Assembly (NCBI GenBank): GCA_047495785.1
Contig: JBLDXI010000003.1
Location: forward strand, 1,054,001 to 1,118,000
From: Lepidodermella squamata
Lineage: Eukaryota; Animalia; Gastrotricha
Reading direction: 5' to 3'
DNA length: 64,000 nucleotides
Part shown: positions 54,308 through 64,000 of the stretch, piece by piece
Numbering within the stretch: position 1 is the stretch's first letter
How the letters are laid out: each line of letters begins with the position of its first letter
The notes under the pieces: model-generated
Told to the model about the DNA's origin: nothing
Database searches by the model: none
The model's input: only the letters and a program-made list of their open reading frames with translations
Translations under genes and position numbers: made by a program

Positions 54308-57300
54308 ATGGTAAGTGGAAACTTAAAAAAAATATTTCATATAATTTTATTTATTTTTAAAATTTTCAAAATAATTTGTGAATTTTTTAAAGTTGAGAAT
54401 ATATTTCACCTTATTTTTTTCAGGCCGACGAATTGAATGAAGATGTATTACTCGGCGGTGATTTGAATTACGAAGATAATTTGCTCGACTACGACGAGGA
54501 CAATATATTGAGTGACAATTTCGAAAACAACAACGCCCCATCCCAACCTTTCCTGTCATCCGGAGGAAACGACTTACGCACCAGTTTATCCCGAACCATC
54601 AGCAACGACGTGGCGATAGATCACGGCGAGGAGAATATTTTCGAAGACGAAGAGCCTGTCGACGATTTGTTGGATGGAACCGGCGGTGATGTTCATGGCA
54701 ACCAGGAGGACGATTTGTTAGAGCCTAGTCCCGTTGAAAAACGGCGCGAATCCGTCAACACGGGAGACTCGCCCGATCGAGAGCGGGTCGGCCGTTTCGA
54801 GGCAGAGCGGGAGGATGTTCGGGCTCAGTTGAGTTATCGCGAGGACACTAGGGCGTCGATGCGGGGCAGCGGCAGAGGCGGCCGGGGTGGTTTCTACGAA
54901 AATCGAGGTCGCGGCAATTACCACGAGAATAAATTTCAGCGCGGTAGAGGGAACGGCAATTTCGGGCCTCAGCGCGGCTCTTTTCGCGGGCACGGGCAAA
55001 ACCCAAATTTTCAGCCTCGAATTTCTCCGCAAATGCCGTTTCAACCCGCTGTTTTGCAAATGTCGGTCCAACCCCAGCCGGATCCTCAGCAGTTGTTGCT
55101 GGCGAATATTCGACTGACAGGCATGCAGCCTCAAGTTTTGTTGGATCAATCTCAACAGCAGCGGCCTATGTTTCCGGTTAATGTGTTCAACCCTGTTGCG
55201 GGGTTGCAAATGGTGCAGGCTCAACAGCAGCAGCAACAACAACAACAACGGCCGGTTATGATCGCAACGGCTCAGCCTCAGCGGCCAGCAATCGACCCAG
55301 CTCAACAACAGGCCGAATTATTTCAGGTAATTCAGCTGGAATTAAATGTTAATGTTGAAGTAAAAAATTAGAGGGCTTATATATAAATTATTAAATGTTG
55401 ATAATTTTTATGGAATGGAATTGGATGTGTCAAGTGGATCCGTTAAAATTAAGGTTCCAGCGCTAAATTTGAGTTGAAGCTTTAGATTTTCCGAAATGGA
55501 TGTATTTTGGGTTTGAAGTTTTATTATGAAATATAACTTTTTAAACCTAACCGATATCGATTTCCTATATTGATTTTCAGTGATTTTCCGATATCAGTAG
55601 TCCATGAGAATTTCACTCAATAAGCAGTCCATAAGAATTCCTCATGACCGAGTGGATCAGGCTGCTTAACCTTCATTTTCGCGCGGCAAATGCTTAGACT
55701 TTTTCGATATATTTCGATAAATTTTGCCAATCTAGTAATTCTAGTGGCGAAAAATAGCTTGGAAATGAGAATTTTAGCTTTCTCTCTTTGGTATAACGAA
55801 AATATCCATTTTATCGAGCGTCAAAATGGGCTGTAGATTTCTTTACCTCTCGTCTGAACATCAGGAACTTCACAGATTTGAAGATTTTTTTTTAAAGCTA
55901 TTCGATGTTTTTTCGTTCACTGATATTTAAATTGGATTCGCTTCAGCTGGTTTGCTAATTGGGTATTAAATTGGCTCATTTTTCTCAAACAAAAATTCCT
56001 TGGTCAATCGTGGGCAAATACCTAATCCTTATGATTTTAAAATCTATAATTTTGATATTTTAGGCACTGTTGATGGAACGTGAGCGGCAAATGGTTGAGC
56101 AGCAGGCTCATCAGCACGATTTCCTACTGCAAAAACAGCAAGAACTGGCGCAGCAACAAGCTCAAGCTCTTCTAGCCACCCAAGTCCTGTTACAGCAGCA
56201 GCATCAACAAAATAACCTGCATCGATCAGCCGAGGAAGAGAAGCTTCGGCAACAACAGGACGCTTTTCTCGCGAGTTTGGCCGCTAAACCCGTTCGAAAT
56301 GTTGCTCCGACCCCGCAACAGCAGCAACCGCAACAACATCAACCGCAGTCTCAGACTGTTTTTCCGCAAATGCAATCTCAAAGTAAGCCGCAAAATTTGG
56401 AACCCCAACTCCAGGCTTTGAGCGGCGAGCCGAGGCGGAAAATTTTGCTGAATCCGCAATTCCAGCAGAAAATGATGGCCCAACAAGGTGCTACTGCTGC
56501 TGCCCAGGCTCCTGGGCCTGAAACAGCGGCGTCGAATCGTAGAATAGTCCTAGCCCCATCGAAACGCGACTCATCTGGCCAAGCGTTGCCGGATGAAATC
56601 AGCCCGGCGAAAATACCGAAACCAACCACAAATCCGACCCCGGAAAAACCAGTTTCGACCTCGAAGCCGGTTCCGGCTAAAACCTCGTCAAGTATCGACA
56701 ATAACGGGCCGGCTAAAACTGAGCAACCGGTGAGCAAAAAGGATGCCGAGCCCGTTAAACCACCTGTTGCTTCCTCCACCGCCGCCGCGCCCACTTCGTA
56801 TGAAAGTGAGTATGAGCGGGCGGAACGTGAGCGGGAAGTAGCGCGCACCCGGGTGCGTATCAAGCGAGAGGCGTCGCGGTTTCAAATGTCGGCCGAGCAG
56901 ATTTCGGAGGTTGAGAAAATGGTTTTCGACCAGGGCGTCGATGTTTCAGCGGCTGTGGCTGCTGTCAAACAAGGTCTGCGAGCGCCGAGTAGTGCGCCGA
57001 AAAAACCCGCACCGCAAGTACCCGTATCAAAAGTGAGTTGAAATTCGAAATATATTTCATGCGGAAAAATGTGTTGAAATAAAATTTTGAAAAATTTCAA
57101 TTAAAAATAAATAAAAAAATAAATTTGAAATTAAAATTAAAATTTAATTTTGTTAGGCCGTTGCTCCTGTATCCCGCCGTACCTGCGTTTTGATCGAGAA
57201 TGTATCGAGCGCAACGTCATCTGAGAAAATCGCCAAATGGTGCCGAAATGTTGGCGAAGTCTTGGTATGCTTCAAAAACTCGGAAAACTTGTATTTTTTC

Positions 57301-57791
57301 ATTTTCATTTTTCATTTCAGTCTTGTGTGCGAAAATCGTCAAACAGCATTCTGGTCAAGTTCCGCGATTCGAAAGCCGCGGCCGAAATGGCGTCGAAATA
57401 TTCAAGGTGGAGTGTTGATGAGATGCGGTTGCCGCCTCCTCACCTATCTCTTTATAATATAATATTAAAAATAGGCCTTAAAGTAGCAATTAATCATAGA
57501 ATATACAAAAATATAAGAGTAATATATCATGATAATCTGGGCCTATTTTCTCCATCTTTCACGTTTTTCTAATTTTCAGTGAATTCTTTGAGATGTGATA
57601 TCCGTGTCTTTCGGCTAATAGAACGGTGCCTATGCTAAGCTTACCCTTTCAAAATATGAGAAATTTGATGACGGCTCTTCATCGTCTGCTTTTGCACAAT
57701 CACTTATGATATCAGCGTAAAATTCGATCAGACTTGGGAAATTTCTATTATTTAGGGAGAGGGGAGGGGGCAAATCAATTTTGTAGTCTGA
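54308..57791 (+). CDS. RBM33: RBM33-like RNA-binding protein (exons 54308-54310, 54424-55326, 56064-57032, 57157-57264, 57321-~57431, probable tail 57771-57791)
   Basis: Acidic N-terminus, RGG region, Q/P-rich middle. C-terminal RRM-like CVLIENVSSATSSEKI...VGEV...VKFRDSKAA...KYSRWSVD resembles the remembered RBM33 C-terminus. Confidence 0.65.
57432..57770. mobile_element. 339-bp element with imperfect terminal inverted repeats interrupting the last coding exon of RBM33-like
   Basis: Left TTGCCGCCTCC vs right reverse complement TTGCCCCCTCC (10/11, including flanks). Removal restores TTG CAA ATC AAT TTT GTA GTC TGA. Confidence 0.55.
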
Positions 57792-58414
57792 TCTCCAATT
57801 TAATTTTTCTTATGTAGCTTTTTTTCTTTTTTTGTGAATATTTTTCTTGAACTGGTTTTGCTAGAGCTGGTAGAGTTTTTTCAACAACCTCGAATTTTAC
57901 GCTGAAATCATCCTACGTCTAATTCGGTCCCAGTTCCAATTGAAGAGTTTACTAAGCAAACTGTTTGCTTGATATAATCTCGCATGTATAATTGGTGAAT
58001 ATTCGAATATTTTTTATCAAAATTGTATGGGGCTATTCCTGTAAACCTAATTCTAAAGAATATATATAAATTTCCATTCGAATTGATTTCTCAGTTCCGT
58101 TCTTGGCGGAATATCCTGTGATTTGCCTCGCGTTCTACTTCGTCTTCTCACCTTTGCGCCGTAGAGTTATTCGATTGTCTTTCGCTCTAGCACTCAACTA
58201 TATGCAATACACCGCGCGTAAAATTGGTCCATTTTTAAGGCGGCGCCGCGCTCAGCAAAACAAAAACAATAGCTATATAATGGTAGAATGTCCCTAGTGC
58301 GTACAAACAAGTTGTTGTCATTAATTAGCAATTCCACGCTCAATTAGCCGCGAAATCAGGCGATCGATTCTCTTTTTGTGCTGTATGCTAGCTTGTCACA
58401 GCGGTTTTAGGTAT

Positions 58415-61400
58415 ATGCATGACGGTGAGTGTGTGATGGCATGCGCGCTAAAGGTCATAAAAGTGTGATTCATCGCTACATTATAATTCGATTATGTGTG
58501 TGTGTACTCAACACACTTGATAGTATCTTCTTATTAGAATGCATTACCGGCGTTTGAGTCACGCGTCTCGCTCGAGTTGGCTTTCTCTCACCTGTGAAAT
58601 AGCGTTTTATTTATTCGAGCGGCTTTAGATCGTTTCGCTCAAGCTTAATCGCTCAAATTAATTAGAATCGGTCCTTTCTCACCTTTTTCTATTATTAATT
58701 ACTTTCAAGCATGCTTTTATACCTGGATTAGATTTTTCTAAACCCCCAACTCGGCTGGTCTTTCAATTCTTTGCACTCTTTCATAAGGAAATGGTTTTGA
58801 GGTTCCAAATCTCTGTGTTATATTTGAGCAGCTTCAAGAAATGCGCCATAAAATGAAATATTCTACTTAATTTAAATTTTGTTGAAATGATTAGCCGTAA
58901 AAAAATGTGGTATACAATTTGGCCTTTCTAGCAAATTTGAATTTATGAGGGATAGTTTCCATCATTTCAACAAAATTGGTCTTGCTGAGATTTCTGTTTT
59001 ATTATACACTTGTGATGGCTGTTAACGCATAATTTTTTCATTTACAAAATTGATGATTATTGCTATATATGTGTGATACCTGTTTTTGACCGACTTTTCG
59101 TGATTGTTCTATATTTGGAAAAATTGTGCGTTAACGGACTGGTATGACCGCATTCTATGTTGAGTTGTATGTGCCTAAATTTACCTGTTTTCGTGTGATT
59201 TTTCATTTCATGGCGGAAATATTTCTTGAAATTGCTTGAATTTTTGTGGTCCATGTTAATTTTATACAGAGGAAATATAAATTATTTTTATTGATCATGT
59301 GAGTGTTCCTTAAAGCCATTTCATACGTATATAATTTTCTGTAATTATATACTTATGCAATTAATTAATTAATTGTTGTGCTTTGGATTAATTGATGCTC
59401 AACGCTGAAATCTTAATTAATTTATCTACCTTAATGAGAACAAGTGAGATATATAATTATATCATAGCTATACCTGTATGGCTTATTGCAACTGTGTTTT
59501 TGCTAATTCGTACCTTCAGATATAACATGGATATGTCGATATTGACTCTGAAACTGGTTGATGAAGATAACGCCAAGGACAGCGCCTGATGCAAGCTATG
59601 ATTGGACTTCATTCATCTCGACTCGAAAGCTGAAAAAGACTATCCAACGTTTAACTGCCGATTGTTGTATAAAAAGTGATGATGAAAAGCGAAAGCTGAA
59701 TCGTCATTTTGCGAACTCTGATTTTCGAGACTGATGAAAATTATCAGAGAATTTTCACGCGATTGTTTATTTGAACGTTATTTCAAGTGCTATTCAACGT
59801 TTTTTGTCGCGTGTGTCGTTTCAACGTTATATATAACCCTCGAAAAATATTATCGTTGATGGAACACTTTTATGTATAAAAGTTGGAAAAAATACTTTGA
59901 AAAAATATTGGAAATATTCCAATTTCATCTGAAAAGTAAAAATTTTTTACCTTGAATTTAATTTTTTATCTATTTTTAGATTACTTTTATCTATGCACAA
60001 GTGATGATATTAAGGAGGAATTAAGCAAGGGAGATTATATGGCAACACCTGGTTTTACTCAGTGGGCGTGCGGGACGTGCACGTTTCACAATTCGAGATT
60101 GGCTACGAAATGCGAAATGTGCAATGAACCACGCGGTAAAAAGACTTCCAGCGATCGAACGATCTCTTCCAAGCTCAATGGTGAGTTTTTTTCGATTTTC
60201 TCGATTTTTCAATGATAAATATCGATTTTTGACTTGGATTTTAATTAGTTCAGTTAGACCGGGATCTAATGCGGAGTCAAATTTTAATTCAATTTTCTTG
60301 AATTTTTGAAATATTTTGAATTTTTCCTTTGAAATTCTAGGACATTGCAATAAAATCGGGCTCAATTTTAAGTATTAGTGCATTAAATTTTGAGAAAATC
60401 TATTTTTATTCAATAAAACACTTCTCAAATAATTGTAAAATGTTTTTTTTTAGAAATCGGTCAATCAGTGGGAGATTTTATTGACAAAGTTGCGTCGAAA
60501 ATGCAGAAAGAATCTGATCGTGAAAATAACAGCCAGAATATCAATAGCAAGCATCACCCGGTGAAATCTAGTGCCAGTTCGTCGCAGCTCAGTCGACAAG
60601 CAGAGGTTTGGACGTGCCCGAGTTGCACGTACAGCCAGAACCCGATGTGGTCTCGAACTTGCGACTCGTGCCGCTACGACCCAGCTGATGTTTACGGTAT
60701 GTTTTCATACTAACAAGTATTTTTAGTTCACCGGAGTTCAAAAAGCCTTCTTTCGGAACAATTATCTCGAAAAATGATTCTATTTTTTCTCAATACTTGA
60801 GCGTTTATTGAGAATTGAGAATTGAAAATTCGGAATCTGAGGGAGAAAACTCAACTGCCAATTTGGTGATTCGGCTGAATTTTCGGGATTTTTTGTTCTC
60901 GTTGTAAGGTGTAGGGTGTAGTTAAAAACTTGACTGGCAATTCCAATACCGGAGACCATGAAACTCAAGTTCGAGACTGGTGGTGGTGTTGGATTATGTC
61001 GCATATTCTAATTCCGCCCTATTCTAAACAGTTAGCCTCTCTCGTGGCCCTGCAGGTTGAATGCATTAAAGCGTAGATTCTCGAATTTGATATACCCACC
61101 CATGGTATGTGTATTGCGATTAAATGGTATGCTATTGGCGTGGCGCATGTCTAGTGTTACCAATTCGAACATAGACTTGCTTTTTCGGGCGTTTTCATTC
61201 TTTGGGCCATGACGTTTTGAATATTTCTCTCGAAAAAAGTTGGTAGCGTAGAAAGTTTTTGCGAAAGTTCGTGAGAATCGACGATTACTCGGGGTTTCAC
61301 TGTGATTTTGCTTTTGGCGACTGACAAATCCTGTGCTGATAAATGCTGATGCAATTTCCACTTAATTCGAAATCGAATAAATCAATAGCGAAATCGCATC

Positions 61401-64000
61401 GAGAATTGATCAATCAATAGAGGACATCATTATAAATATTTGTGGTTAACGTTATTTTGATTCTGTTATTCAACTTGTTTTCTATTTCTTCCATTTTCTT
61501 CCTTATTTTAGAGCCGCAACTCGGTCCTCCTCAGGTTGTGCCTGCGCCTACTCCACCCCCCGCGCCTATGCGGAAATCAGTATCTCGCCCGTCAAATCTA
61601 GCCTCAACCTCCGTGAATCTCCCGAGTGAGCCGCTCGTGAAGAAAGAACCGCTCGACTCGCCAACTATCGACTCAACTTCGTATTTAATCGAAGACTACG
61701 ATTCGCAATTACACGCAGCCTTAGACGACTGGCAGTCGATAGTCACAGTGAACGCGTTGCAACGGAAGCGTTACAGCGACCCGAGTTTTCCGCCAACCCT
61801 CGACTCCATTCTGTACGACCCGAAAAGACCGGTTTCCGAGAGCGAACTGCTCGACCGTGGCCAAAGCAATATCAATTTCGACATTTCCCGCATCAAATGG
61901 ATCCGGCCGTATGACGGGCGCGACTTCAGCAGCGATTCGGCGTGGACTGTTTTCCGATCTCCGATGCCGAGTGACATTCACCAGGGTGTGTTGGGCGACT
62001 GCTGGCTGGTCTCAGCGCTGTCTCTCATCGCTTGTGAACCGTTGTTGCTGCATAAAATTTTCATTACGCCCGATTTTCAAGTCACTGGTGCCTATGCGCT
62101 GCGGCTATGCATCGACGGCCGATGGCGCGTCATCATTATAGGTGAGCCATATTTGGGTACCCCGAATCATTTGGATTTTGCGCCAAATTAACACCAAATA
62201 CCTTGAAAAAAATGAATATTTTGTTATCTTTATACCGCTCGATATATCGCCATTTTCCAACTTTTTATTACTTTTTCTGTGCTCCCGCGCACTCACACAT
62301 CAAACTTCGAGAGTAAATGTCGTAATTTAGGTCAATTTTTTAAGAATTCTCAAATGATCATGAAAAAAAATTAGTCTTTCCGCCTGCTCGGGATCCAACC
62401 TGCTTCGTTTTTCGGTAATAATGTTCCCAGACAGAGCTTTTCGCTTGTAACGCTGCCGTTCGGCGCACCCAGATATTTTCGGGCCACCTTACTTATGTTC
62501 TCGTAACGTTGTTCGTTAAACTTCCATTTATCATTTATTTAATTGCCCAGACGACCGAATTGATTTAATTCAATTTTCCCATTTCCTTCTAGACGATGTT
62601 TTGCCGTGCTATGGCAGCCAAGGCCGTTTGCTGTTCTCGAAAGCGACCCGAAACCAACTCTGGGTACCTCTCATCGAAAAAGCAATGGCAAAATCCTACG
62701 GCTGTTACGAATCTCTCGCAGGCGGGCATACGTACGAAGGGCTGAGCGCGTTAACCGGCGAAGCGGTCGAAACTTTCATTCTACCCGAACCGGACGGCGG
62801 CGACTCGAAAGAATCGCACGACCCTGAAGATATTTGGATTAAACTCGTCTCTTACCTCGAAGCTCGTTATCTGATAGGTGCAAGTTGCGGCAGACGGTCG
62901 ACCTCGGAAGAAATTTACAACTCAGTCGGGCTGATAAACAACCACGCCTATGCAATTCTAGCCGTTCACTCCTCGATAAATCCAGTTGATGGCACGCCGT
63001 TGCGGCTAGTTAAACTACGCAATCCCTGGGGTACGTCAGACTGGAAGGGCGACTGGTGCGATGCGTCGCCACTATGGAAAACCAACTGCCCAAATGACGT
63101 CAAAAACCAACTGGCGCCTTACGGCCAACCCGAGGGCGTATTCTGGATGTCATACCGCGATTTTCTGTTCTATTTCGAGAATGTCGATGTCTGCAAGGTT
63201 CGGCCTGATTGGCGCGAGTACCGCATTTCAGCCGCGTTCCTCCGCCCCCCGTCCGAGTCGGTTGTAGTCGCACTGATTACAGTGGTTGAGACTACGCAGA
63301 TCGAACTGATGCTGCACCAGCACGGCCTGAGGCAAAAGTCGAAATTGAACCGTAGCCCCGTGGATTTGTTCGTTTTGCTATGCTCAGTCCGCCGTGTCGG
63401 GTCGCTGATGCTGCCGGATCGTATTATCGGCACGTCTGGGGCGAGGCGGTTGGATGCGTTTTCGCAGGCTGGCGAGTTCCTCGTGCAGCCGGGGGAGTAT
63501 GCGGTTGTGGTTTTCAGCGCCCATGCTGCGTGTCTGCCGGACTGTGTCAATCGGCTGTACACGTTGTCGGTGCATAGTGCTAAGCCGTTGGTTGTCGACC
63601 CTATCGTTCTGCCGCGCGTCTTCCTCGTCGATGCTATGATCAGCTATGTGCGCAATTTTGGCAAAAAGTATTACGGACCGGGCGATATTGTCGTATCCTA
63701 TGGTGAGTTTTTCTTTTTTTTCCCGAATTTTCCGGCAATGAATACTCTTCTATTCTTTTCCAGTAACATCGCATTTCAGCGGTCTAGCTCTGCTCGTTGA
63801 TAATGGATCTTCTCAGTGGCAAGTCAAGGTCGATTGCGACTGTGAAGGCTCAGAAAACGTTGTTTCAAGCCGGTACACGCTGAAGTCGGTCGATCACATA
63901 CCGCCTGGCCACTGCCAGCTTGTTCAACTGTTAGTTCAACAACCGCTCTTCACATAATTTGTAGGATTTTACGATGTTTTTCTTTAGATTGACGCCTCTT
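58415..64000 (+). CDS. CAPN15: Calpain-15 / small optic lobes (SOL); 3' end outside or at window edge, first exon 58415-58424 tentative
   Basis: Two RanBP2 zinc fingers (WACGTCTFHN...CEMC; WTCPSCTYSQN...CDSC). Catalytic QGVLGDCW, NNHAY and LRNPWG. C-terminal SOH-type region. Confidence 0.92.

Follow-up and report, generated by a model that had tools for sequence, protein, structure and literature searches.

A stretch with inverted ends in the last exon of a probable RRM-protein gene of Lepidodermella squamata: a likely exonic insertion that is not an introner

In the gastrotrich Lepidodermella squamata, the last exon of a gene with a probable C-terminal RRM is interrupted by a stretch of 339 nt (57432–57770, with no strand assigned), or of 345 nt (57429–57773) if the TTG and CAA at its edges are counted as parts of its inverted ends. 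Coordinates here and below are positions in the window, the 64,000 nucleotides of DNA that we analysed. The reading that we favour, and to which we give somewhat better than even chances, is that a non-coding piece of 339 or 345 nt with inverted ends was inserted into the last exon, that it is not an introner, and that by default it would be retained in the mRNA. An earlier note on this DNA had proposed both an insertion into the last exon and an introner-type gain of an intron; the first part of that proposal is supported, and the second is not. As it now lies in the gene, the stretch would be an ordinary exonic insertion, probably altering the final few residues of a single protein. It also carries a more general lesson: a frame-keeping GT...AG pair that can be drawn across an insertion is no evidence of intron gain unless its two sites score as real ones do and there is also a family of such introns or a transcript.

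The window is eukaryotic in character, with short, AT-rich GT...AG introns and a GC content of about 41%. The upstream part of the host gene, on the forward strand from 54308 to 57032, was read directly from its open frames and GT...AG boundaries. Its start ATG (54308–54310) is followed directly by GTAAGT, and exons 2 (54424–55326, 301 codons) and 3 (56064–57032, 323 codons) are open throughout; outside the interruption, the gene is intact. Exon 4 (57157–57264) encodes AVAPVSRRTCVLIENVSSATSSEKIAKWCRNVGEVL, 36 codons that probably supply the first strand and first helix of the RRM. Exon 5, preceded by TTTCAG, runs from 57321 to 57431 before the interruption (SCVRKSSNSILVKFRDSKAAAEMASKYSRWSVDEMRL) and closes on ...KYSRWSVDEMRL, the last base being 57431. 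All of these exons lie on the forward strand. The four introns of the gene have the donors GTAAGT, GTAATT, GTGAGT and GTATGC and T-rich tracts ahead of CAG or TAG acceptors, and their GC content is 0.15–0.32, against 0.50–0.55 in the exons. Downstream, also on the forward strand (59952–63800), lies a neighbour that by eye resembles a calpain-type cysteine protease, with a GVLGDCWLVSALSLIA motif; its preceding exons carry CxxC...CxxC motifs that look, again by eye, like RanBP2-type zinc fingers.

The host protein would be about 700 residues long, passing from an acidic N-terminus through an RGG-rich to a Q/P-rich region, a layout that we take to resemble that of RBM33. Its sequence appears to be of low complexity and to evolve fast, and the C-terminus is probably an RRM. 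In the assembly that we searched (121 Mb, 151 contigs) the gene is single-copy: its upstream part and exon 5 were each found once, and no second allele or paralogue was seen. Several RRM_1 loci elsewhere in the genome are paired at identical scores on different contigs (C32:397580 with C7:1951350, C63:129551 with C35:11061, and C84:72474 with C99:27174), which implies that the assembly holds duplicated blocks or uncollapsed haplotypes; the host gene is still present in one copy.

Relatives of the protein were sought by several routes. Pfam returned no family for any exon piece, including exons 2 and 3, searched singly, and word searches were blank for exon 3, for its 213 non-repetitive residues and for the 111-residue frame across exon 5. 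Exon 2 had no homologue among 1.84 billion representative proteins, its sole match being a spurious LCCL-repeat protein. No transcript-derived protein of the host gene was present in the protein collections. Metagenome scans, from which near-identical records may be left out, were blank both for peptide patterns and for a 30-mer of exon 5 matched exactly, as were PDB searches with both RRM halves (the exon 4 and exon 5 pieces). Neither exon 4 nor exon 5, searched alone, matched PF00076 RRM_1 above its curated cut-off, and the host locus is absent from the 155 RRM_1 matches in the genome. The assignment of the C-terminus, which is probably an RRM, draws on one weak lead. The nearest named Atlas clusters of exon 4 carry PF00076 RRM_1 (0.90 with 183 shared features, and 0.89 with 178), exon 5 alone giving no RRM lead in the Atlas. 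By eye, CVLIENV could be an RNP2-like motif and SILVKFRD an RNP1-like motif, and there are two helical stretches, as a candidate RRM layout.

The interruption falls between a codon for L (57429–57431) and a codon for Q (57771–57773). As the earlier note had described, and as direct reading bears out, the frame of exon 5 is open to 57431, and after a gap of 339 nt QINFVV and a TGA (57771–57791, forward strand) resume in that frame. QINFVV* begins 450 nt (3 x 150) past the start of exon 5, so the frame is kept, and six codons and the stop remain after the stretch; six codons are too few to serve as proof of the old C-terminus. Left unspliced, the frame of exon 5 continues as PPPHLSLYNIIL...SPSFTFF and then meets a TAA at 57570–57572 on the forward strand, which gives a foreign tail of 46 residues after ...DEMRL. 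The composition changes together with the frame. GC is 0.35 across the whole stretch, against 0.50–0.55 in the exons; exon 5 itself has 0.50 and the left half of the stretch 0.28, with an abrupt shift at 57440. No long open frame was found in the stretch under either the standard or the invertebrate mitochondrial code (code 5). On the minus strand, its right, GC-richer half contains an open frame of 46 codons (57633–57770), for which the genome gave no relative and Pfam no family.

The two ends of the stretch are inverted with respect to each other. The left end (57429–57439) reads TTGCCGCCTCC and the right end (57763–57773) reads GGAGGGGGCAA, both on the forward strand; the complement of the latter, TTGCCCCCTCC, matches the left end at 10 of 11 positions. 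In the register TTGCCSCCTCC...GGAGGSGGCAA, this 10/11 inverted repeat takes in the TTG and the CAA. Extended inwards, the terminal inverted match covers 21–22 of 28–30 nt, and repeat finding delimited arms of 29 nt with 76% complementarity. The ends are of low complexity, with pyrimidines running together on the left and purines on the right. Only 12 of 20,000 random 351-nt segments of the window equalled the terminal match, so that the terminal inverted repeats (TIRs) claimed for the boundaries of the stretch are confirmed and exceed what chance would give. The 264 kb sampled contain nine occurrences of CCSCCTCC or its complement; within the window it is confined to 57432 and 57763–57770, the two frame boundaries. 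No target-site duplication accompanies the ends: whichever register is taken, the flanks ...GATGCGG(TTG) and (CAA)ATCAATT have no direct repeat in common. The inverted ends themselves point to what may be a non-autonomous cut-and-paste element.

A DNA search of the genome with the stretch (E ≤ 10) found no other copy and returned only the locus itself, and 57690–57925 and 57772–58400, used as queries at the same threshold, also found only their own locus. This search skips very common words and scores the best candidates only. A genome search for the two 11-mer ends spaced 250–420 nt apart recovered this locus alone, with a control count of 0. Short-word blastn against the window and twenty 10-kb samples gave no relative of the stretch, a sample of 264 kb that excludes only families of more than about 1000 copies. 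A related family is unlikely, whatever its size. The earlier note had suggested looking for copies at other exon junctions; none appeared, the genome searches having found the locus itself and nothing else, and no autonomous partner with the same ends was found in them. Three other origins for the stretch were tried and rejected: an RNA gene or SINE (Rfam and tRNA searches both blank), a mitochondrial fragment (no long open frame under code 5) and a diverged duplicate of intron 4 and exon 5 (a similarity no better than that of shuffles, 20 of 200).

A single-copy stretch could also be a native part of the gene. On this account, which we consider unlikely although it is the likeliest of the alternatives, the AT-rich sequence past 57431 would be a read-through tail or, if some other splice precedes it, an ordinary 3′ untranslated region. 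QINFVV* in frame and the inverted ends would then be coincidences or part of an RNA structure. Native sequence would be expected to be unique in the genome, as the stretch is; a given frame will not rarely stay open for six codons; and the DNA fold of the region only moderately beats that of shuffles (z = -3.1). The homologue searches were blank, so there is no reference C-terminus. The same account, however, must set down to accident a rare 8-mer and its complement that sit exactly on both frame boundaries, a length divisible by three and an abrupt change of composition at 57440. It also fits the presumed fold poorly. The last strand of an RRM has an alternating hydrophobic pattern, and by eye the join L|QINFVV has such alternating hydrophobics, whereas the unspliced, read-through frame places three prolines (PPP) at the position expected of the last strand. 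QINFVV is presumed to be this fourth and last strand, and the original end of the gene. From the sequence, then, we infer an insertion rather than a native 3′ end.

If foreign DNA entered the exon, it need not have come as an element. Within the stretch, 57706–57727 is the reverse complement, at 21 of 22 positions, of 57890–57911, a segment of the 3′ untranslated region about 100 nt past the stop codon. None of 300 shuffles reached the 16-nt exact core of this match. A 9-nt inverted match (57726–57734 with 57785–57793) adjoins it and spans the stop codon, and the 22-nt pair as a whole brackets QINFVV*. No further copy of the pair was found in the genome, nor any target-site duplication, and a second element of 206 nt, bounded by the 57706/57911 pair, was rejected on those two grounds. 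The pair may be the trace of templated break repair, or it may be an RNA hairpin. Were repair responsible for the whole stretch, a double-strand break at TTG|CAA would have been sealed with captured or templated DNA, for part of which the nearby 3′ untranslated region would have served as an inverted template; the lack of a target-site duplication and of any related copy would follow, as would the 22-nt inverted copy of 57890–57911 and the adjoining 9-nt copy of 57785–57793. Local templates, however, cover only about 30 of the 339 nt (about 9%), the other short flank matches are at chance level, and repair alone would not lead one to expect matching inverted ends placed right at the junctions. 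We regard such a filler as doubtful, placing it behind a native end of the gene, and as less likely than the insertion of an element with inverted ends.

The remaining question is whether the stretch could be removed as an intron. Splice signals were scored with position weight matrices built on 69 putative introns (one per locus) from the 264 kb, each of 42–80 nt, AT-rich and bounded by GT...AG, with 55 open codons to either side once joined and with read-through blocked; the model is crude. In this set the donor consensus is GT[A/T]A[G/T]T, and the acceptor has a T-rich tract and T or C at -3, with G there in about 9%. The four introns of the host gene, which were not chosen for the purposes of the splice model, lie between the 26th and 91st percentiles of the set for their donors and between the 38th and 91st for their acceptors.

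The earlier note had pointed to a GT at 57428–57429 and an AG at 57765–57766, and on the sequence this pair behaves as described: removal of 57428–57766, exactly 339 nt, restores the frame as ...EMRGQINFVV* with an L-to-G change. The donor at 57428 (GCG|GTTGCC) scores 0.6 bits, which puts it in the 1st percentile among the putative introns and in the 26th among all GT. The acceptor at 57766 (GGGGAG|G) scores -3.4 bits, below all 69 putative introns and in the 36th percentile of all AG; its base at -3 is G, and purines follow one another where the putative introns carry T. Both are under the median of random GT and AG in the genome, and under this model it is clear that the splice signals of the proposed intron are no better than random dinucleotides. 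Other pairs also keep the frame (57407 with 57766, 57414 with 57755, and 57412 with 57759). Their donors, like every donor within 25 nt, fall at or below the 7th percentile of the set. Exact canonical removal of the stretch is impossible, since its boundaries can slide by one base only, giving GC...GG. The stronger acceptors that had been noted at 57579 and 57755 do look better than 57766. The best acceptor-like site in the stretch (57558–57579, forward strand, TTCACGTTTTTCTAATTTTCAG|T) scores 5.6 bits, in the 20th percentile of the putative introns and the 93rd of all AG, and is the only fair one; splicing to it would give ...EFFEM* or an immediate stop.

These scores bear on the idea of a nascent intron, in which the element is spliced out, for example as 57428–57766 to give ...EMRGQINFVV*, and an intron is gained from a single insertion. 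The existence of a GT...AG pair that spans exactly 339 nt and keeps the frame, and of further in-frame pairs, speaks for this idea. Set against the poor scores of the donor and acceptor and of every donor nearby, the lack of an exact canonical removal and the lack of a family of such introns in the genome, it appears very improbable. Its most specific form, in which a one-off element without a target-site duplication in the last RRM strand is removed at weak, non-consensus sites and the C-terminus is restored, is the least probable reading that we weighed; were it true, it would show, as is rarely possible, a single insertion in the act of becoming an intron, with no introner family behind it.

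The broader claim of an introner can be put aside. Introners are families of similar introns whose similarity extends up to both splice boundaries, and in the survey of Gozashti et al. (2022, PMC9860276) only families of at least four were kept. Searches of its own genome place the stretch in no such family, and the crude splice model finds no usable splice sites at 57428 (0.6 bits) and 57766 (-3.4 bits). Having neither a family nor usable splice sites, the stretch is not an introner. The introner-type gain of an intron that had been suggested is not supported: the stretch has no relative in the genome, no target-site duplication, and splice sites in the 26th and 36th percentiles of all GT and AG.

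An insertion that stays in the mRNA remains the reading that best joins these observations. It is favoured by a discrete stretch with inverted ends, by its multiple-of-three length and by the sharp change of composition at the frame break, and further by the otherwise intact gene and the pattern of the L|QINFVV join. For a transposon, an insertion with neither a target-site duplication nor a related copy would be unusual. We envisage that a non-autonomous cut-and-paste element, now single-copy, landed between the L and Q codons of an allele that would have read ...GATGAGATGCGGTTGCAAATCAATTTT... and whose protein would have ended in ...DEMRLQINFVV*. With the stretch retained in the mRNA, the last six residues would be replaced by the 46-residue tail that ends at the TAA at 57570. 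Retention is taken as the default because the signals for removal in frame do not outscore random GT and AG. The acceptor at 57579 could draw some cryptic splicing as well, and this too would alter the C-terminus.

Set beside known systems, the stretch shares several features with introners: it is short, AT-richer than the exons, placed in coding sequence and bounded by inverted ends, three divides its length, and it can be spanned by a GT...AG pair. Some introner families likewise have inverted ends and no target-site duplication, and families range from 5 to more than 2000 copies (PMC9860276). Unlike introners, the stretch is without a relative in 121 Mb, and its candidate splice sites are no stronger than dinucleotides taken at random.

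Exonic insertions that are spliced away offer a second comparison. In C. elegans, cryptic splicing often removes Tc1 insertions, which speaks for a nascent intron here. Like those insertions, and like Ds and dSpm in maize, the stretch lies in an exon and has cryptic sites in or near its ends that could remove most of it; unlike them, where removal is proven by transcripts, it is known here from sequence, with poorly scoring sites.

New introns in Daphnia have been ascribed to break repair, and end joining by polymerase theta leaves templated inserts. The stretch resembles both in being a unique insert that belongs to no transposon family and includes a short inverted copy of its flank. We know of no such repair event with matching inverted ends at its junctions, and the stretch differs from them in having such ends and in drawing only about 9% of its length from local templates.

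Unlike MITEs, the stretch lacks a target-site duplication, further copies and an autonomous partner, and its ends fit no nameable superfamily. With MITEs and other non-autonomous DNA transposons it nonetheless shares its size of 339–345 nt, its want of coding capacity, an AT-rich interior and, as their defining terminal feature, inverted repeats that match at 10 of 11 positions.
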